A DNA stretch of 63,971 bases, filler included, from Guillardia theta CCMP2712 (Eukaryota > Protista > Cryptophyta), in the NCBI RefSeq assembly GCF_000315625.1. It is 5 parts of 5 records of this genome, joined end to end, with 100 filler letters (N's around TTAATTAATTAA, not from the genome) between each part and the next. Parts side by side here need not be neighbours in the genome. Positions count along the whole stretch, not along the records: positions 14,345 to 42,032 come from NW_005434563.1; 4 more parts are not named here. The stretch is one strand, 5' to 3'. Position 1 is the stretch's first letter, and the number at the start of each line of letters is the position of its first letter. The position numbers and the translations under genes are program-made. Below, piece by piece: positions 17,806 through 40,274 of the stretch. Below the pieces are notes generated by a model, which was given only the letters and a program-made list of their open reading frames with translations, ran no database searches and was not told where the DNA came from.

Positions 17806-18987
17806 CTACCAAAATTTGCTTACCTCCTGCTCGCAGAACCAAAGCGCCGTGTTGCGGTGACTCTTGTTCTGGTACAACCATCCTAGAGGGGAGTAAGGAG
17901 CTTGCATCTCCAGGAGCGCGTCTGGAGACGCGATGTTCTCCGACATCTCAGCCGGATCTCCTGGCAGAACCGGATGACTGTCGCTCCCTGTCGACAACAG
18001 ACCCTCTTGCACGAATGCATATGTACAAAGTTTTCGAGCTGACGGCCTTTTAGTATAGGTGGGTTGCAAGCATTCGTCCAGGAAGCGTTGCGCGTCCTCG
18101 TTCAGATCCTTGGGGATCGCTGGCCTTGCAAACAATCGTTTCGCTCCCGATCCCAGGTCGGGAGCTTCTTCCGGAGGAACATCTTCCATGGTCAGAGCAC
18201 CTGTCAACATCTCCAAAACACAGCATCCCAAACTCCAAATGTCCGACTGTCGCGCAAACACTCCCTTGATAAAAACCTCTGGAGCAGAGTATCCCAACGT
18301 CCCCTCAAACGATTGCGATTGATGGGGAGCATACACTCGCACTTGACCGAAGTCAGATAGCTTCACCACACCCAAAGTCGTGACCAAGCAGGTACTGCAA
18401 GTGATGTTTCTGTGCACGATACAGTGCCTGTGCAGGTAGTCCAGACCAGATAGGATGTGCCGTGTGTATCTGGCTGTTAGACGGTCGCTGAGAGCCCCAA
18501 ACCGTGAGAGAATGCATGCAATACTTCCTCCATCGCAGAATTCCATCAACACACATAGTTTACCGTCTCGGACACACGATCCCTTGTACTGAACGATGTG
18601 GTTATGTCGTAGCAGCCTTAGGGTATTCATCTCTCGCATGAAGCGGTCAGTAGCCTTGGAATTTGCCGATGCGGCTTCTTGTCTGCAGGCCATGAGTTGG
18701 CCAGTAACATCATCGATAGCAACATAGACAACTCCGCTACCCCCGTATTTCAGAGTTTTGTTGCCTCGATGCCAGCTGGTGAAGCTTTCATTCCTGTTCT
18801 CAAAGGCTGTCCTCTCAATCTGTTTTTGCTCTGCGAGGACAACAGGTGTCAACTCCCTCCTCTCTTCATCGGTGAAGTAGTTGTCATCCAGACTGTCCCA
18901 GCTCCCCAGTTCTCGGAGATTTCCTGAGCTCCCACTCGAATGTATGGGAGACGGAGATTCTCTGGACACATGCATTGATGTGACCAC
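17806..18987 (-). CDS. STE11/MAP3K-like Ser/Thr kinase-domain protein, probable pseudokinase. Further upstream exons likely reach ~19.8 kb.
   Basis: Motifs: YGGSGVVY, LRHNHIVQYKG, MEFCDGGSI, YTRHILSGLDYLH..CIVHRNI, KLSDFG, GTLGYSAPEV, SDIWSLGC.VLEMLTG, KRPSARKL. Confidence 0.8.
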   Translation of the reverse strand: MVTSMHVSRESPSPIHSSGSSGNLRELGSWDSLDDNYFTDEERRELTPVVLAEQKQIERTAFENRNESFTSWHRGNKTLKYGGSGVVYVAIDDVTGQLMACRQEAASANSKATDRFMREMNTLRLLRHNHIVQYKGSCVRDGKLCVLMEFCDGGSIACILSRFGALSDRLTARYTRHILSGLDYLHRHCIVHRNITCSTCLVTTLGVVKLSDFGQVRVYAPHQSQSFEGTLGYSAPEVFIKGVFARQSDIWSLGCCVLEMLTGALTMEDVPPEEAPDLGSGAKRLFARPAIPKDLNEDAQRFLDECLQPTYTKRPSARKLCTYAFVQEGLLSTGSDSHPVLPGDPAEMSENIASPDALLEMQAPYSPLGWLYQNKSHRNTALWFCEQEVSKFW

Positions 18988-21363
18988 AGCAAAGTCAAGG
19001 TTTACAGCATTCTTGTTTCATCTGCAAAGATAGAAGTTCACAAACATTCGTTGCAGGCTTGATACTGAAACATGCGGGCCTGAGCCCTGGATTGTATCAA
19101 TGAAGTTGCTGCGTTGCTTGACACGAATTTCAGGCGAGGGTGTCTCCCCGAGTCCCCAGACTCGAAGTGCAGCTTGACCAAACTGACAAAATATTTCACG
19201 ACTGTGGAATCGGGGTATTCGTGATGGTGGTCAAAGCTTCTATGACTATCAGCAGGACATATCGGTACCCTGACGAAACCATGGTGTTAGCATTCAAATG
19301 CAAGAAAACCAAATACAACTTGTATGAACAACTATCTGACATAAACACTGTGTTTAACTGAATAAGTATATATAAATTCGACTGGTGAAGCGTCAAGAGT
19401 AACTTATCACATGCAGAAGGAGATAGTTTGAGTATAGCGTGCACAATAAAACTGCCATGTGGTACAAAACAAGTTTGCAAAGAACGTATGAAGAAGTAGC
19501 TTTCTGAAGCTAGTTAATTGGTCTACAACGATCATCCTTTTCGATCAGTTTCCTCCTGGACTGCAACCAAAATGCATGAAATATCTATATCATCGCTCAT
19601 GCACACAATGACCCCTGGTGTTGCTACACCTAGCGAGTAGTCCTGCTCCTGCCTGTCATCCTTCCCAAAAGTCCCTGTAACATTCGGCTGCGCTAAGAGG
19701 TTTTAGGCCGAGTTAACAGCATAACAGATAGCTGGTGGAACCAGCAGAAGCGTGGGAAGTTGTTCAAACGCCCAGCCAGTGCGAATGCCTACATTTGACT
19801 GGGGAAAGCATGCGGTTCATGAGTTGTAAACAGACGCAGTTTTGGAGGAAGCAAGCACAGAATAGCGGGGAAGGCATGCTGTGTTATAGTGGAGGATAGG
19901 AGGAGGCGAGAGGACGACGAGGCCCTCACGGCATGGTAGTGCCTTGCAACAGCGCCCGACATGCGGCAGGGAGAGGACGATCGTCTGAGGAAACATGAGG
20001 GGTAGTCTGTCTATGAAAAAGGGGGTAGGGGTACATTGTATTATAGAGAATTTGGGGGTTGTTTGAGTTACGTCGAGGTTTGGTGGGTGGGGTGGTCTAC
20101 GCTGAGGTCAAAATGCTATAAAGGGTGGGTAGTGACGGCACTTTTCCTTTCACTGCATGGGTGGTACAGGTATTGTTGCTGAAGGTGCTCGAGAAAGAGG
20201 GGTAGGGGTGGGTATTTCAAGTGAGGCATTGTGAGGCTGCAGGGCTGGAAGGGTGGGGTGGTCAAGAAGAGGGGTATAACAAAACAACAATGTTTCAGAA
20301 GCAAGAAGGCGGTGAATGCCATTTGGGGGTGGGGGTCGTTGGGGAAAAGGGGTCCCCAAGACAACTGGGGGGTACATGGGAGGTGGGGGTAGTGTTCAAC
20401 CGGTAGTCCTAATTTCTTTCCGCAAATCTCAAGGTTGAAGGGGAAGGTCACGGGGACAGGAGGGGTAGTAATGACAGATAGTTTCAAATCGGATGGATTG
20501 AAGGAAAGAGTACCGGTAGTGGGTGAAAACTGGCGATCCTGAGAGAGAAAAAGACTGGAGCATGGAAGGATGTCTCAATTTTAATATAAACTTTATCGAG
20601 AAATGCTCCACTATAGAGCAAGATAAATGGGAGTCTGAAAATGGTATTAACGTGTCTCGCTGTGCCGGGGGGGTACTGTGCCGGGGAGATGGAACCCGGG
20701 GCCGGTGGTACTACCGACCCCGACCCTTTGTATTAAACAACCACTACCCACCCCATTTCCCAAGGGATCAGAGGTATAACTTCAAGGACCCCAACCCCGT
20801 CATGCTCTGACGACAGGTTTGGTGTGTTATACGTACTTAGTAACATGGTGGGTAAATTATAGAGACTGGGGTAGGGTGGTAAAGACTGATAAGGGCAGAA
20901 AGAATTAAGCCCGAACTGTGTATTTCTACTTTTGCTGTCCCTTTCCATTCTTGACCGTGGATATCGAAACTAGCTCTTTTCGATTTGTTTTTCTTTTGAA
21001 CCCTTCGTCGGCACGTCAACCTTGACTGCGACTCCCATCCGAAACCACCCCCACCCCCTCTTCCTCACCTTCCCCCACCGGATGGTTTATCACAGTCACG
21101 AGGTCGATGGGTGTTTATAAATACTTTTGTATTTAAAACTCAATAACTGCATTGCTTTTAGCTCCTCGTGACTGACCCCGTTGATCCCCGTTGTACGACC
21201 GGTGTGGGTTTACTGTAACGGTCGTAACGTAAAACTCCTTCCGGCATGTCCTCTTGCGAGGTCTTGAGATGTAACGCTTTGTAACTGCAACAGCCGGGCC
21301 GGGCCCGGCTTGCCGGATACACCTGGGCCGAATTTTACTGAGAGAACTTTGTCCTGCTTGCCG

Positions 21364-22695
21364 ATGGCGATGGCGATGCGGCTATTGGCGGCCATGGCCG
21401 TCATGCTGTGCATGAAGGAGATGAGGGCAGATGAGAAGAGGAGTGAGGATCAGCTCTCAGACTCCACCCATACCTCACCTCCTTCCTCCACCATCGCTTC
21501 CTTAAGCACCTTCCTGACCTCTCGTCGGATGTTCCAGGACAGCGCTCTGCTGTGGGCGGCGGCTGATGGACAGTGTGAGGAGAGCGAGGCCGGGGCAGAG
21601 GAGCAGCATGACGACGATCAGAATATGATGAAGGACGTGTGGTGGGATCTAACACTGGTTGAGAGCTCCTTCTCGTCATGCCGGCAGCAGGCATGGATCA
21701 ACGACACGCAGCGCTTCAAAGTCGGAAGGCACGAGGAATTCTCCGTCTCGAGGCTGTCGTGCAGAGGGAGCGATCAGTTTGAACCGCCGGAGGACTCCAT
21801 GAGATTGATCGTCCTGGTCGACTACGAGCTCGGCACAGTAGACTCGTGGCGCCATGCTGACCTGCTCGCAGCATGGCTAGTGGAGCCAAGGGTCGTGTGT
21901 CCGTCTTGCTACGAGTATGTCAAGAACAACCGGCACAAGTTCGACCTGATCTTAAGTCACGAGGACGATTTTGTCGTGCAATCAGGAGAGAAGGGGATGT
22001 TTGTGAACGCGGCCGTGCCCTCCATCGACCCATCGCTGTTCCTCCCCGACAGTTTCTTCCGAGACCCCTCGGACGCGTCTGAGTTGATGGGGACGAAGAG
22101 CAGGCTGGTTTCAGCCATCGTCAGCTCCAAGAGGTCTACGACAGGACAGCGACTCCGACACGACGTCCTGGCGTCGCTAGGAGGGAAGCTAGGTGATATC
22201 TACGGCGCCGGGCACAGGCCCCTCCCGGAGAAGCACTCTGCGATTGGTCCCTACCTGTTCCACTTGGTGATCGAGAACAACAGGAGGGAGTGCTACTTCA
22301 CTGAGAAGCTTCTCGACTGCCTCGTCCTCGGGACCGTCCCGCTCTACTGGGGGTGCGAGAGGATCGGGGACGTCTTCGACGAGTCGGGTCTGCTCTCCTT
22401 CCAGACGGTGGAGGAGCTCGCCCAGCTGCTGGACAACCTGAGCCCTGAGCTGTACGCCGAGCTGTATCCTTCCGTCCGGCGGAACTTCCTGCTGGCCACC
22501 AGGGCATACACGGGAATGAGCCCGATGCATCAGCTATGGCGGTCCAAGGGGAGGAGGATGTCGATGGATCTTCCCCGTGTGTCCGTCGTCAGCCCAGCCA
22601 ACGACTCCTCCTCCCCGGTCCGCGGAGCCCTCGAGCTGGACTTCGCCGTCAAGGGCTCTTCCATCCTCAGGCTCGGTGCGGCTGAGGAGATGTGA
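21364..22695 (+). CDS. Glycosyltransferase family 10 (alpha-1,3-fucosyltransferase-like) with N-terminal signal/anchor. Short 3' exons probably continue to ~23.1 kb.
   Basis: GT10 signature YLFHLVIENNRRECYFTEKLLDCLVLGTVPLYWG, plus the hydrophobic N-terminus MAMAMRLLAAMAVMLC. Confidence 0.8.
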   Translation: MAMAMRLLAAMAVMLCMKEMRADEKRSEDQLSDSTHTSPPSSTIASLSTFLTSRRMFQDSALLWAAADGQCEESEAGAEEQHDDDQNMMKDVWWDLTLVESSFSSCRQQAWINDTQRFKVGRHEEFSVSRLSCRGSDQFEPPEDSMRLIVLVDYELGTVDSWRHADLLAAWLVEPRVVCPSCYEYVKNNRHKFDLILSHEDDFVVQSGEKGMFVNAAVPSIDPSLFLPDSFFRDPSDASELMGTKSRLVSAIVSSKRSTTGQRLRHDVLASLGGKLGDIYGAGHRPLPEKHSAIGPYLFHLVIENNRRECYFTEKLLDCLVLGTVPLYWGCERIGDVFDESGLLSFQTVEELAQLLDNLSPELYAELYPSVRRNFLLATRAYTGMSPMHQLWRSKGRRMSMDLPRVSVVSPANDSSSPVRGALELDFAVKGSSILRLGAAEEM

Positions 22696-25180: not shown

Positions 25181-26072
25181 CGTTAGAAGAAGAAAGAACT
25201 TAAACATTCTTTTCTGGGTATCATCATTCCCAACTTTCAAGCAGAAGGGAAGGAGTAGAAATGTTGAATTGTTTCACATCAGCACGAAGTCTGATCTATT
25301 CAAGCCTGATCTGCACACCCAATAGATCCTTCATCAACATTCTCGAATCATCTTGTGCCCTACTCCATCATCTCATCAACTACGTCGTTTCCTCAACAGT
25401 TTTTATCGTAAACAGTTCTTCCTTACAGCAATTTCGGAGGGCTCTTGGCCCTCCGAGGCTACTTGCGCCCCTCCCGGTCCTCTTCTACCATTCCAGCTCC
25501 TTCTGACAGTCCTCCTGCTCTTACTGCTCCTCCTCCTCCTCCTGTTTCTCCTTCTCCTCATGTTTCTGCTGCTTCTCCTCCTCCTCGCCTTCCTATCATG
25601 CCCAACTTCCGATAACCAAAGACCTACAATTCGGACCCGAGCCTAGTTGACCTACCCCCACCCTACCGTGACTGCGATGAAGATCATTACCCTACCCCCT
25701 GTTTCATTACTCATAGAGTGCGTCGGAAACCCCGGCCGTCCCTACCCCACCCTATGTGTATCCTTAACATTTTCCGCACCCCTCGACTTGTTGAGCCTTT
25801 TCATCACCCCTTCTACTACGCCCAACCACCCCTCATTCCCTCAGGAACCCCCTAAGGTAACCCCCGGCACAAACCCATTGCGCCGATGAACTGTTACTAC
25901 CGGTGGAGGTACGAATAGAACAGGCAGGGAAAAGCACCGGTGATACAAGGACCTACTGCCACCCTACCCCTCAGGTGATACGGCGGCTGCTAATGAGAGA
26001 CTTGATAATAGATAAACGCCACGAATCTATCTACCACGGGTACTCTCCCTCATGATGTGACGGAATATGTGA

Positions 26073-26175
26073 ATACCCTTCTGAACGACGAACTAAGTTT
26101 TCGCACAGAACTGCCGTCGTATGATTGAGAGCCGCGACTCTCCGTCATACAACGGCAGTTGTTTTTTTTTGCCAA
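26073..26175 (-). ncRNA. Candidate Fanzor omegaRNA: scaffold hairpin + element right end + ~20-nt flank-derived guide
   Basis: The 52-nt hairpin at 26109-26160 reads AACUGCCGUUGUAUGA-CG-GAGAG-UCGCGG-CUCUC-AA-UCAUACGACGGCAGUU on the minus strand, with G-U pairs on this strand. It lies ~215 nt after the stop and 16 nt before the CUUAG end. The 5' extent is unknown and could reach the stop codon. Confidence 0.6.
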
Positions 26176-28612
26176 ATTGTCTTCGGATGTTGTTGGAGCC
26201 TTACATGAATCCTACCAAATGATGCCAGTCAGTCACTTCAATGATCACATGTCGTAAACATCGGATCATAATGGAGGCAGGCACCGGGCAGGCAGGCAGG
26301 CAGGGAATTAGGCATCGAGTCCCGAGGGACGCAGTCTGGGTAGGGAGGGGGCGACAACAATCATTGAATTCACCTCAGGGGCGACGTAGGTGATTCGGTC
26401 TTTCAGGAAACACATTGAAACAAGTGAGTATATTCAGTGCAGCATTCAAGTCCCTGGATTTGATCGGCTTTCCTTTACAGCTGTCACGATAACAGTTAGA
26501 TGAAAAGGTGAATTACAGGAGTATACAAAACTTGACATTACCTCGATGATCTGCAAAATTTCAATCCTCGTACTTCACTTTTCCTTGTTTTCAACCTACA
26601 GGTCTCGTCTGGTTCTTTCCCTGTATTTTCAATCCGTCGAAGCACATCGAGCTCAGAACCACAATCGTTACAGCACTTGGTAGTACGGTATTCGTCAACA
26701 TCTACGACTCTGTAGTGATTCTCGAATCTTCTTCTTATCCACCTGACCGGTACAGGCCTTTCTCCTCGACGTCCTGTAGACGGGAACCTTGCATTTCCAT
26801 ATGCGATAACAGGTTCTATTTCTCCCTTTCCTTTCATTGTACGGATAAACCTGTCGACTGACTTTCGTTTCGAAATGTAGATGTCGAATTTCATCCTGGC
26901 GTATTTTCGCTTTGAATAATGCGAAGTTAACTCCTCCCAATGACTTGTAACTGCAAGAAGATAGTCTTCGAATCTTGATAGACTGCCGCCAGACTTACTC
27001 GAGAACCCCTTGAGATATTGCAATGTCGATTGAATATCTTGATCCCACGTCTTTCTTTTCTTTTTATTGCGATTCAGATGTGACTCGTGATAATATTGTT
27101 TTCTCGAAAACTGAAATCTTTTTCTGATTATTTGTTGATCATCTCTGAATTGTTCGACGGCCGATATAATGACGCTCCTCCCAGGGTCGATCGCAATTAC
27201 CCTTGGGCAATTTTTACATTCTTCGATCTCTCTTTGGTATTCTGAATTTTCATGTAATACTTTGTATGATATTGATATCTTCTTCGCCGATTTCCGTTCA
27301 GCCCTTTTTCTATCGGCAAGCCATTTGGTAGTGCGCAATGAAGGTTCCTGTTCGAGTCCATCGATTGTTTTGACAATTAACGTGAATCGAAAACAAACCG
27401 ATACACCGTCTGTCGTGATACTTGTAATCTCCTCTCTCTGATCTCTGAACAGATTCGAACAGTCGAAAATCCTTCTGAAATTCTTAGAGTTCTCCAAAGT
27501 TTGATCTATTCTCATGAACGATTTTTTATCTTCTCCCGGTTTCAAACTGTTCGCTTCTTTCAAAATGTAATACATCACATCATTATCGATTGTTAGATGT
27601 TTTCTGCCGAATTTCGACATTGGTGCTGCCTTGAATGTTTTTTTCGAGAGACCACGATCTTCGAAGAACTTCAACATGAACATGTGTGTCTCGATTATCT
27701 CAAACAGATTTTTCTGCAACCTATGATCAAATTTGTCATATTTGAAACTAAAAAGATCTTCGTCCCCCGATAATCCAATTAGTTGTTTCATATGGTCGAT
27801 GAAGGTTCCTATCTGCTGTGAATTATTCCTGTTAAACACTTCTGTCTTCAACTCGTAATCTTTCCTTTGAAACAATACATTCTTCACGTCTTCGATTTCT
27901 TGCTGATGGTTAATATGTAACTCTCCTTTGCAGAATTCGGCAATGAACTTTTCCAATCGGTTTGTAAAATTTGCTTTCAGGTCTTGGTAGAAATTCGTTC
28001 CATATTGATTTGCAGCGAATACAATAGCTTGCGAGTCTCCTCGAATTCTACATAAATCAACGAAAAGATGTCTTTTCTCTGACCAGAAACGTTGTAGAGT
28101 TGGATACTTGTTATCTGTACGGCTATGTTGTTCCATTCCAAGTGTAAAAACATTCCAGAAAAAGGTCGATTTGGCTCTCTTGATTTCATCTACTACATAT
28201 CGTAAATTCCCTGTATCCCTGCCCCATATCAGAAAACAGTTGAATATCATACTGCCTCTTGATGTGATCTGACTGATATGTAATACCCATCTGTCGATCA
28301 CGTCTAAAATCGATCTGTTCTCTACCTTGAGTCTCGAGTATAACCCACATTTGACGACTCTCGTGAATGGTTTTGAATAACTTATTTCTTGACCGTTGTC
28401 TGAATCATCTGTAATTCGTTTTCTCTTCCTCGGCATGTTATAGTATGTTAGTCTGGCGAAACCATGTTAGATAGCAGGTAGTCGCTACATTTTTTTCATT
28501 ACCATCGTTTCAGTGTATTGTCGGACCGCAAACTCTGTAATGGCGGGAAGATGAAACGAGAGCCACAAACTTTCCGTCGGAGGCGGGAAGTTTTTTTTTT
28601 TTTCTTTTTTAA
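26093..28612 (-). mobile_element. Non-autonomous Fanzor-carrying element without TIRs; ends inferred
   Basis: A low-GC island interrupts a C-rich intergenic tract that resumes on both sides. The minus-strand junctions are gggtCTTAA-aaaag (left) and aaaaCTTAG-ttcg (right). Both ends have subterminal hairpins, and there is no transposase gene. Confidence 0.6.
26375..28436 (-). CDS. Fanzor: Fanzor RNA-guided endonuclease (TnpB/Cas12 superfamily), 666 aa; complement(join(26375..26480,26542..28436))
   Basis: RuvC-I is VIAIDPGR. RuvC-II is rearranged: IAYGNARF has Gly at the canonical Glu site, with an alternative Glu in VDVDEYRTTK. Zn finger CNDC...C(RSSS)C. RuvC-III SRDLNAALNI lies in exon 2. 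N-terminal basic NLS-like MPRKRKR. The intron reads GTAATG..CTAAC..CAG. Confidence 0.93.
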
Positions 28613-29671
28613 GACCCTCATACAGCCCCATTGGATGGGTGATTGAAACCTATCAATGACCCCTGTCATGCTGGTCCATGACTCCTTCGGGAGTCCTTTT
28701 GTCGATTAAAGGATAAACACACTACCCCCACCCCATGAATACGAACTTCGGAAGATCTTCCGAATGTCACTGACCACCCCAGGGTACTCAAAGCACCACC
28801 CACTGCACATTCCCCCGGACTCCGGGATTTCGAGTGTGCCAGGCTGACTTGTTCCACCCCCTTCATTCCCCCAATGACAGTGGAAAGGACCAGGGTGGGT
28901 CATACTCAAAGGCTCGGACTCGGCCGGGGGACAACCGCGGGGAACCGGGTATTACCCATCTCCCCCGAGAGTACCCCTCCATTTCATAATTGATCTGCCT
29001 ACAACAGCAGGGTACTTGACCTAAACTCCGCTCGCACCCTCCCTCGGCTCGGAGTATCGGCACCCCACTTTACGTGACCACCCCTTTACCGTACCAGGTA
29101 GTCACCGTCGTCCCACCGGTCGCAGCCCCAGATACTGAGAGGGTACTAGCCTGACCCCCGGCCCCTCTGAGTAGCCGGGTTCAATGGCTTCTACCGTGAC
29201 GGTACCCTGCGATTTTACTCAAAGGTCGTAGCCTGTACCGTAGTACCGTGCCACGAGTCCGATCAGGGCCCCTACCCCCATTTTCAGTCAGATACACTGT
29301 CATCGGCGTGGGTACTACCCCATGGGTACTTTTTCAGGCAAGCCCCCCACAAAAGTAAACACTGAACGACTTCAACGGTTTTCATCTTACTGTTAACAGT
29401 TAATGGTTTTAAGTCTTAAAAACTTCAAATCCGAACGACCGGTCACTAAGCGCCGCCCGACCCCCCGGCGCCCCCCGGCGAACTAAGCGGCCCCGGTCAG
29501 TGCCGGGCCCGCCGCACCGCCCGGCGGCCGGGCTGCTCAGAACTTGAACGCCGAGGGGGGCCGGAAAATGATGGCAAAAGTTGCCGCAGCCTGGCGGTTT
29601 GACTGGCCACCGGGCCCTGTTAACTCAAAGTTAAGCCACCGGAGTTGAAGTTCTGACCGTCCGATATAACT

Positions 29672-38065: not shown

Positions 38066-40274
38066 ATGAGCACACGCTTCGGGCAGACGCTCCTCCTCCT
38101 CTCGCTCTTCGCAGCGGCAGGAGCTGAGGTTTTCTTCCAGGAGGACTTCGATGGTGATCTTTGCTTCCTCCTCCTCTCTGATCCACGAGATTCCCGCTGT
38201 GTTGTCCTCTTTCGTGATCCATTCCCTCCGTTTCGAAAGTCATTCAAGTGTCTTGTACTCGAGCGTGAATGGAAGTACAGAACTCTTAGAATGATTGTTC
38301 GAGCGTTCACTCATCTTCATACTCATGCGAGAAAATCCACCCCTTGTTCCTCCTCAAATGATGCCCATGTGTATGATCAAGGTTTCGTGCGCACCCTGCA
38401 GTCTCATGTTGTCTTGATCGACGCTATGTTGTGCCTTTGCCGCCCCTCTACTGGACCTACACTCCCTTTGAGTCGTCTTTTCTTCTGACTGAAATTCTTC
38501 TGCCAGATGGCAAGTGGGAATCGCGCTGGGTTAAGAGCAAGTTCAAGTCCAGCGATGAGGGTCCTTGGGAGCTCTCGGCCGGAAAGAACTACGGCGATGC
38601 CAACAACAAGGGTGAGGACAGGGAGAGGTAGAGACGACTTGACTGACATTGCTCGTGCCCAGGTATCAAGACCATGACCGACTACAGATGGTACGACATC
38701 TCCGCCAAGACCCCCTCCTTCAACAACAAGGGCAAGAAGCTCGTACTCCAGTGAGTTATCAGCGTTTACCTCTGGTGCGGTTGGTTGAGATCCTCCCAGG
38801 TACACTGTCAAGCACGAGCAGAACCTCGACTGCGGTGGCGGCTACATCAAGCTCGCCCCCATGAGCGACCAGTCCAAGTGGGGAGGGGACTCCGAGTACT
38901 CCATCATGTAATGCCTGGACAGCAAAGGAGTGAGGACGAGACGTGCTGATGCCGTTCTAGGTTCGGACCTGACATCTGCGGGTACTCGACCAAGAAGGTC
39001 CACGTCATCTTCACCTACAAGGGCAAGAACCACCTGATCAAGAAGGAGATCAAGCCTGAGACCGACGAGCTCACTCACATATACACCCTCATCCTCAACC
39101 CGGACAACACGTACGAGGTCCAGATCGACTTGAACAAGGTCGAGAGCGGTTCTTTGTTGGAGGACTGGGACATGCTCCCCCCCCAAGAAGATCAAGGACC
39201 CCAAGGTGTTGTTGCTGCTCTCCTGCTCTCACCGTGTCGTTGAACGCTGTCATGGCAGTCCTTCAAGCCCGATGACTGGGATGAGAACGAGGAGATCGAT
39301 GATCCCAAGGACAAGAAGCCTGACGGCTGGGACGACATCCCCAAGCAGGTGAGGAGGAAGGGAGCAGAGGCTGAGGTCAAAGGCTGACGAGGATGCAGAT
39401 CGTCGATCCTGACGCCAAGAAGCCTGACGACTGGGACGATGAGAGTGACGGCGAGTGGGAGGCCCCCATGATCGACAACCCCAAGTACCAGGGAGAGTGG
39501 AAGCCCAAGAGGATCCCCAACCCCGCCTACAAGGGCAAGTGGGAGGCCCCCGAGATCGACAACCCTGACTTCGTGGACGATGCTGAGTGAGTGGCTGTGT
39601 AGCATCCTCAAGACTCGTCTGACTTGTGGTCGTCAGGTTGTACAACGTTGTCAAGGACAACGGCCTCGTTGGCTTCGAGTTGTGGCAGGTGGGAGGAGGA
39701 GGAGACGTGGATGCTTGTTGAGCTGGTTGTCCCGATGATTTGACATGTTCGCTTATTCCCTGAGCAAGTCTGTGCTGAAACTTCACTCTTGGCTGTGTAT
39801 GAGGGCCCGAGGCCCTCGATGTGACCGGTCGGTCGGTGGCTGGTGATGACTTGCTGGGCAGGTCAAGGCTGGCAGCATCTTCGACAACATCTTGGTCTGC
39901 GACGACCCTGCCTATGTGAGCAGGACGAGGGGAAGGAGCAATGGGGGGGCGGGGGAGGGAGGCGAGTAGGGGGGGTGGGTTATCAGAGGAGGATGAAGGA
40001 AGGAGGAGAAGCATGTGCTGACGGTTGCGGCAGGCTAAGGCCCAGGCGGAGAAGAACATCGTTCCCCTCCAGAAGGCCGAGAAGGAGATGAAGCAGAAGA
40101 AAGACGACGAGGAGGCCGAGCAGCGCAAGAAGGAGGACGACGATCGCAAGGCCAAGGAAGCCGCCGATGACGACGATGATGATGTCAGAGGAGGAGGTGG
40201 AGAAGAGGCGAAGACTTGACATTTGTTGGCAGGATGATGAGGACGATGATGACAAGAAGAAGTCCGAGCTATAA
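38066..40274 (+). CDS. CALR: Calreticulin (multi-exon)
   Basis: Signal peptide followed by EVFFQEDFD, then [45 protein letters not shown]-domain repeats ([40 protein letters not shown]), [17 protein letters not shown], and an acidic tail ending KSEL*. Confidence 0.97.

Follow-up and report, generated by a model that had tools for sequence, protein, structure and literature searches.

The 63,971-nt stretch of the Guillardia theta CCMP2712 genome analyzed here (the window, in whose positions all coordinates without a contig name are given) carries, on scaffold_111, a real, intact and transcribed Fanzor1 locus, in which nothing is categorically new. By its sequence, the gene is an intact one for a Fanzor1-type, TnpB-derived RuvC nuclease with predicted nuclease activity, and the aligned genomic copies place it in a 2.7-kb multicopy, non-autonomous DNA element. 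The reading that we favor, at a probability of roughly 0.75, is that this Fanzor1 gene belongs to a 2.7-kb element of about 14 copies whose right end would encode an omegaRNA, whose adjoining flank would encode the guide, whose target-adjacent motif (TAM) would be TTAW, and whose mobilization would be of the piggyBac type and in trans. To our knowledge, no RNA-guided DNA nucleases other than Fanzors are known from eukaryotes, and what Fanzors do in nature is not understood. Beside the characterized GtFz1, the locus gives G. theta a second, very divergent Fanzor1 family with young copies, an intact D-E-D triad of the canonical kind and mapped ends, and it leads to a concrete prediction for both the TAM (TTAW) and the guide. 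The piggyBac-like ends and flanks of the element offer a testable partner in a host where the original study found no transposase association.

An intact and transcribed Fanzor1-type gene

A minus-strand open reading frame (ORF) of 632 aa starts with an ATG at 28436 (26538..28436). Its exon-1 codons reach a GT at 26541, where a 61-nt GT..AG intron (26541-26481) is followed by 35 in-frame codons and a TGA at 26377-26375, and the spliced Fanzor product is 666 aa long. Contigs of public RNA runs were placed on the window, and a contig of run X1 joins position 26480 to 26542, skipping exactly 26481-26541; thus, the 61-nt intron is real and Fanzor mRNA is made. The protein contains the motifs AIDPG (D417), DEYRT (E582) and RDLNAA (D642), the zinc-finger cysteines C589/C592 and C628/C633 (CxxC...Cx4C), and an N-terminal MPRKRKR, a basic segment that resembles a nuclear localization signal; comparable basic starts are found in both paralogue families. 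An earlier note on this DNA, made from the sequence alone, had described the 666-aa spliced ORF with its RuvC acidic residues, a four-Cys zinc finger and the MPRKRKR start, all of which are seen in the sequence, with the intron joint now found in RNA contigs as well. The low-GC island that it had described is also evident, the GC content of the element being 37-46% as compared with 52-72% in the flanks.

Pfam gave a weak match of exon 1 to the Cas12f1-like TNB domain (PF07282, E = 0.033). The intronless paralogues matched PF07282 with E values of 2e-4 to 3e-6, with GtFz1 in the same range, which is below or near the Pfam cut-off. In a sequence search of the PDB, SpuFz1 was the sole significant match (E = 1e-6), with an alignment that begins in the RuvC-I region and reaches the zinc finger. 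A search profile built from the window protein, two paralogues of the same genome and three distant matches retrieved 6209 cluster representatives at E <= 1e-3, including 765 at E <= 1e-30 that are mostly full-length (550-700 aa). An alignment of 81 sequences shows no variation at D417, G547 and E582 and almost none in RD.NAA. A Gly or Pro at the canonical RuvC-II Glu, combined with an alternative Glu further along, is a feature of Fanzors (Jiang et al. 2023, PMC10530073). Such a rearranged RuvC-II is found in the window protein, where Gly547 occupies the canonical Glu position and Glu582 is the alternative, and the earlier note had read these residues correctly.

An AlphaFold (AF2) model of the exon-1 product, with a predicted local distance difference test (pLDDT) score of 84.7 and a predicted template modeling (TM) score (pTM) of 0.85, predicts a bilobed TnpB/Cas12-like fold with WED, REC, RuvC and TNB domains. 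When this model was compared with the PDB by Foldseek, the top seven matches were all Fanzor1 structures, led by SpuFz (E = 1e-19, TM 0.62-0.67) and followed by PpFz and then GtFz (TM 0.51), with Cas12f, Cas12g and other Cas12 proteins far behind. The structure comparison that the earlier note had proposed thus returned a RuvC/TnpB fold match, and its description of an intact, Fanzor1-sized TnpB descendant agrees with an exon-1 model that best matches solved Fanzor1 structures. Because of the SpuFz1 match, the invariant catalytic residues, the rearranged RuvC-II and the Foldseek list headed by Fanzor1 structures, Fanzor1 membership is well supported at the protein level, in part by this predicted structure. 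No paper that names the Fanzor family of the window protein was found in the literature.

The earlier note left undecided whether the gene is GtFz1 or a paralogue, and the question is now settled in favor of a distinct paralogue family by the locus and by the short stretch of similarity. Identity with GtFz1, or with a near allele of it, would agree with the shared organism, the similar size and the TTAA-type motif in both, and it was nevertheless rejected on locus, sequence and residue evidence as having hardly any chance of being correct. The published GtFz1 omegaRNA occurs once in the genome, at contig 7 position 896451, which is the coordinate given for NW_005434667 by Saito et al., and the 690-aa ORF at this scaffold_7 locus is the protein of PDB 9CER/9CES/9CET. 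The window protein and GtFz1 are alike over 51 aa only, at 35% identity, and none of the nine published GtFz1 residue positions fits, with N658 in GtFz1 against D642 here. Judged by these sequences, the window Fanzor is a distinct family, very divergent from GtFz1, and the second Fanzor1 family in G. theta; for this species, Saito et al. (2023) give no more than two loci of the GtFz1 type, on scaffolds 7 and 348. The two systems share the genome and the protein class, the GtFz1 TAM of TTAAN (PMC10432273) is close to the TTAW flank observed here, and the four stem-loops of the GtFz1 omegaRNA (PMC11423790) have a predicted counterpart of four. GtFz1 (XP_005840014) differs in its D-E-N triad, its intronless gene, its locus on scaffold_7 and an omegaRNA of unrelated sequence.

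SpuFz1 of Spizellomyces punctatus (PDB 8GKH, 9CEU-9CEZ) is the best match in both sequence and structure. It shares with the window protein a D-E-D triad with the alternative Glu in DEY(R/K)T and a zinc-finger TNB domain, and both genes lie in transposase-free single-gene elements with a conserved motif upstream of the left end. The structure-based identity, however, is only about 16%, and SpuFz1 elements, for which the TAM is CATA, have inverted repeats of 30 nt, whereas the window element has asymmetric ends, a TTAW flank and an intron in its gene.

A multicopy element with a piggyBac-like left end

The genome (87.1 Mb in 669 contigs) was searched for copies and relatives. In the genomic copies aligned with their flanks, similarity starts and stops sharply, and this delimits an element core of 2704 bp on the minus strand (28712..26009), with TTAT directly outside it at 28716-28713 and 26008-26005 (Table 1). 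The ends that the earlier note had placed at 26073 and 28612 turn out to lie inside the element, and because they were misplaced, the guide and TAM read from them would fall inside it too. The copies comprise about 14 right and 11 left ends, every one of them joined to a Fanzor gene. Divergence among the copies is 0.1-0.9%, and higher, up to 2%, for the copy on contig 99. The 666-aa frame is kept in only four copies, namely the window copy and those on contigs 87, 23 and 29, and none of these four has lost a catalytic or zinc-binding residue or either splice site. ORF and Pfam scans detected no transposase ORF within the element.

The 4-bp flank, either TTAA or TTAT, is equal on both sides in 9 of the 11 copies, including three TTAT/TTAT pairs, which as a sequence pattern is that of a 4-bp target duplication. 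A tree was not decisive as to whether TTAT and TTAA are inherited or duplicated, because the single clade that holds all TTAT copies also holds TTAA copies.

A genome search found the left terminus and its flank also at places without a Fanzor. Over its first 15 nt (28712-28698), the element is identical to the terminal inverted repeat found in G. theta piggyBac-like elements. At C8:308-3224 (C with a number denotes a contig), the terminus occurs twice, inverted and 2.9 kb apart, with the same tetranucleotide (TTAT) outside both ends, and the ORF between the two matches DDE_Tnp_1_7 (PF13843, E = 1e-18). Since the same terminus bounds this transposase-bearing element, a piggyBac-like terminal repeat makes up the initial 15 nt of the Fanzor element together with the hairpin next to them. 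Of the 15 PF13843 matches in the genome, several lie in frames that are open over 670-800 aa, and some adjoin the same terminus. Members of this piggyBac-like family have the terminal repeat CCTTTAAWCGACAAA and TTAA/TTAT flanks, and some of them encode DDE_Tnp_1_7. The earlier statement that there is no transposase therefore holds for the element itself, but the left end and the flanks tie the element to transposase-encoding piggyBac-like elements.

No terminal inverted repeats were detected inside the element, because the last four bases of its right end differ from the repeat (...TCTA vs ...AAGG); the inner eight repeat bases are kept, as is also the case in family B, the second Fanzor family described below. 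In comparison with piggyBac-like transposons (DDE_Tnp_1_7, TTAA target duplication, seamless excision), the Fanzor element thus shares TTAA/TTAT on both sides and the 15-nt left terminus, but it is without a transposase, its right terminus lacks the outer 4 nt, and TTAT is as frequent as TTAA. Cases of Fanzors with piggyBac are recorded in Repbase according to a 2026 review (PMC13565253), and such cases are not mentioned by Jiang et al. (PMC10530073). On contigs 72 and 243, a variant terminus also occurs in pairs with a spacing of 10-13 kb, which may bound large elements; the interior on contig 243 is mostly N.

Some copies have flanks that depart from this pattern. The copy on contig 30 has exactly 66 nt of right flank in common with that on contig 29, and AGTT stands at its left in place of TTAW. 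From this arrangement, at least one event seems to have involved read-through or templated repair. Two ENA metagenome contigs (PRJEB17505) contain an identical 632-aa ORF with a near-identical right flank and different left flanks. The right flanks shared within each of these two pairs may reflect 3' transduction, templated repair or chimeric assembly. A vacant-site search with the repeated right flank of the contig-29 copy found only the 66 nt at the contig-30 copy and no vacant site. The last 30 nt of the right end, which form the terminal hairpin, occur alone at C36:78962-78991, followed by TTAA and away from any Fanzor gene.

The right end as a candidate omegaRNA

The 206 nt from 26211 to 26006 fold with a minimum free energy of -70.8 kcal/mol (z = -5.5), none of 200 shuffles being as good, and the predicted fold takes in the terminal TTA. 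The right end is almost invariant in the 14 copies, and the few indels are confined to a loop and an A-run. A contig of run X1 covers 26006-26213 and then goes on into 195 nt of the flank of the contig-40 copy; thus, transcription reads through the right end. Covariation among the G. theta copies was dropped as a test for RNA structure, since the copies are nearly identical and such a test is impossible. Metagenomic relatives of the window protein have a conserved, RNA-like region of about 105 nt that overlaps the stop codon in differing frames, ends sharply at ...G(C/G)TGTA, and shows compensatory changes in 7 of 18 predicted pairs. The covarying region that these relatives carry at the corresponding position indicates that the clade of the window protein has right-end RNAs.

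Just past the stop codon, a 162-nt intron in the 3' untranslated region (UTR) is spliced in two runs (X1 and X2), with unspliced contigs alongside. This intron sits within the region expected to encode the omegaRNA precursor. In the diverged C1 relic, microsatellite expansions are limited to the corresponding stretch. Folding of the spliced 3' end gave no convincing new helices, and the right ends of family A, the C1 copy and family B align convincingly over their last ~17 nt only. The omegaRNA span of 26070-26375 given in the earlier note consists mostly of the 162-nt intron (26212-26373) and misses the terminal 65 nt of the element.

The right end is likely the omegaRNA scaffold, for which its position, its conservation, its predicted folding and the read-through transcription speak. 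To call the locus a complete OMEGA (short for obligate mobile element-guided activity) locus, as had been done, is an overstatement, since only conservation, predicted folding and read-through transcription lead to the omegaRNA. Immediately beyond the flanking TTAT, the 20-mer at 25985-26004 is unique in the genome at 0 mismatches and is the candidate for the start of the guide.

A proposed model of restorative homing and its alternatives

The proposed mechanism is drawn by analogy with characterized Fanzor1 systems (PMC10432273, PMC11423790) and with a review's reading of the target-site duplication (TSD), under which, in solved Fanzors, the TAM includes the 5' TSD and the scaffold includes the 3' TSD (PMC13565253). 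The omegaRNA scaffold would accordingly be the last ~200 nt, with the 3' UUAU included, and the guide would start at 26004 and be encoded by the adjoining flank downwards. The predicted TAM is TTAW, near the TTAAN of GtFz1, and the protein-RNA complex would cut DNA in which TTAW is followed by a match to the guide. A piggyBac-type transposase, supplied in trans, would mobilize the Fanzor element. Because piggyBac excision is seamless and would regenerate TTAW beside the old right flank, the vacated site would present a TAM with a guide match and hence a target. The cut vacant site would then be repaired from a filled copy, by which the element would be restored (restorative homing). Seamless excision followed by guided re-cutting would thus provide a model for the role of Fanzors.

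Such a scheme resembles the homing of IS200/IS605 elements by TnpB and its omegaRNA, in which a RuvC gene is likewise followed by a structured right-end RNA that would enter the flank, the left-flank motif is the TAM (here a predicted one), and the proposed role is the restoration of excised copies. Unlike IS200/IS605, the window element resides in a eukaryote, has an intron, a basic N-terminus and the motif on both sides, and has no Y1 transposase. As an enzyme, the window protein is one more candidate compact editor; as biology, the locus is ordinary for its family unless the piggyBac link proves functional.

Several observations weigh against the favored reading. The structural model lacks the last 35 aa with RuvC-III, and hence the geometry of the catalytic triad is not visible in it. 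The majority of the copies are broken, and the intact ones differ mostly non-synonymously (12 amino acid changes among 20 nucleotide differences), with no sign of purifying selection, a substitution pattern that fits a recent burst rather than long selection. The right terminus matches the piggyBac-like repeat at only 8 of 12 terminal bases, and it is this alteration that makes mobilization by a piggyBac transposase uncertain. Rfam gave no match to the right end, and a covariance model built from ten metagenomic relatives found its own kind only; neither the window nor families B and C gave a match. Spliced antisense transcripts extend across the Fanzor ORF on the plus strand (window 26394-27404), with GT..AG joints at 26424-26480, 26811-26878, 26947-27184 and 27236-27300 in contigs of three runs. 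In the stranded run X14, for which the strand convention of the library is not established, all reads have one orientation and two have such joints. From the plus-strand joints and the X14 reads, spliced antisense RNA crosses the Fanzor gene, and no long ORF was found in this transcript. Finally, if the TAM is TTAW, the right junction of the element itself (TTAT and flank) is also a perfect target, with no evident guard against self-cutting. An A stands before the motif at the right end of the element, and mostly a C in the left flanks (8 of 13 TTAW-flanked left junctions); ...TCTATTAT precedes the target at the right junction of the element itself, and ...NNNNTTAT would precede it at a vacant site. 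This difference between A and C before TTAW may or may not be relevant to self-cutting.

Part of this evidence would also agree with a decaying transposon passenger, that is, a recent and functionless Fanzor copy whose conserved right end is a transposon terminus or 3' UTR and which has no RNA-guided activity. Only four of about 14 copies are intact, the substitutions among these look neutral, the copies are young enough (0.1-0.9% differences) that their age could by itself account for the conserved right end, the antisense spliced transcripts suggest silencing or read-through transcription, and the covariance model of the relatives misses the right end. We consider this explanation unlikely, as four copies retain the catalytic and zinc residues together with both splice sites, correctly spliced Fanzor mRNA is produced, shuffled versions of the right end fold much less well, and characterized Fanzor1 proteins of like architecture are active (PMC10432273). 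Quite improbable is movement by a route other than piggyBac, e.g., single-strand or rolling-circle transposition via subterminal hairpins, with the left end a captured fragment. Such movement could account for the lack of a detected terminal inverted repeat inside the element, the missing outer 4 nt of the right terminus, the hairpins at both ends and the different left end of family B, and the contig-30 copy, with its 66 nt of contig-29 right flank and no TTAW at the left, resembles 3'-end read-through. It is opposed by the agreement of the two 4-bp flanks in 9 of 11 copies, the signature of target duplication by a staggered cut, by the same terminus and flank rule in a transposase-bearing piggyBac-like element, and by the inner 8 nt of the repeat that are kept at the right end.

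The favored reading, in which a piggyBac-type transposase moves the Fanzor element, has a further extension that we regard as rather unlikely. G. theta Fanzors might work as partners of piggyBac-type transposition. The change of the right terminus (...AAGG to ...TCTA) and the optional 3' UTR intron would then be adaptations that benefit RNA function or reduce cutting at the right junction of the element itself. Such a partnership would explain the TTAA TAM of GtFz1, for which no transposase association was found (Saito et al., PMC10432273).

Table 1. Features of the Fanzor element in the window, and further piggyBac-like terminus sites in the genome
Feature	Position	Strand	Evidence or remark
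5' flanking TTAT, TSD-like, predicted TAM	28713..28716	minus	TTAA/TTAT at 10/11 left junctions
Left end and 5' leader, 276 nt	28437..28712	minus	copy alignment
Left-end hairpin	28696-28679	minus	covaries in C72 paralogue
Fanzor exon 1: residues 1-631 and 2 nt; basic N-terminus, WED/REC, D417, Gly547, E582, C589, C592, C628	26542..28436	minus	
Spliceosomal GT..AG intron, 61 nt	26481..26541	minus	X1 contig joint; splice sites read from sequence
Fanzor exon 2: C633, D642 (RDLNAA), stop 26377-26375	26375..26480	minus	RD.NAA nearly invariant in 81 relatives
Optional GT..AG intron in 3' UTR, 162 nt, starting just past the stop codon, with (CCTG)n microsatellite	26212..26373	minus	joint in X1 and X2
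Right-end region, candidate omegaRNA scaffold; four predicted stem-loops, with 52-nt hairpin 26109-26160 and terminal hairpin	26009..26211	minus	
3' flanking TTAT, TSD-like partner of 28713-28716; predicted last scaffold bases	26005..26008	minus	
Candidate guide-encoding flank, first 20 nt past element	25985..26004	minus	copies diverge here
Further piggyBac-like terminus sites	C19:760583, C154:95823, C89:231988, C72:336732/350240, C243:13203/23808		

Paralogues, metagenomic relatives and neighboring sequences

The second Fanzor family (family B) has about nine copies (e.g., C26:574799-578455) with an intronless 642-aa ORF, whose overall identity to the window protein is 36%. The right end of this family reads ...GTCGTTTAGCTA and is followed by ATAN, its left end differs from that of the window element (TGGTTAAGTGAC...), and its 5' region contains tandem repeats of about 88 nt. 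In the family B copies on contigs 14 and 78, the ATAN flanks look exchanged (ATAC/ATAA vs ATAA/ATAC), such as ectopic recombination or a swap in the assembly would leave them. A third paralogue, a single copy of 639 aa at C72:354986-359782, is 34% identical to the window protein. Its left end, CTAA followed by CCTTTATACGTCAAAAGGATTCC...GGAATTCC, keeps the terminus and shows a compensatory change in the hairpin.

The metagenomic relatives are intronless, about 575-595 aa long and 26-29% identical, and lie on contigs of 60-240 kb with a GC content of 31-50%. The genes near them include ankyrin repeats and an endosialidase-chaperone domain, which suggests that the contigs are of giant-virus or protist origin. 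In one of these relatives (L100), a divergently oriented IS630/Tc1-type DDE_3 transposase adjoins the gene.

The neighbors of the Fanzor element in the window are ordinary host genes, with a protein kinase ORF at 17806-18987 on the minus strand and a family-10 fucosyltransferase-like ORF at 21310-22695 on the plus strand. The extreme skews in the composition profile of the window are due to several purine- or pyrimidine-rich microsatellites. A 42-nt coding repeat occupies 39450-39565, and we take its product to resemble the P-domain of calreticulin/calnexin.

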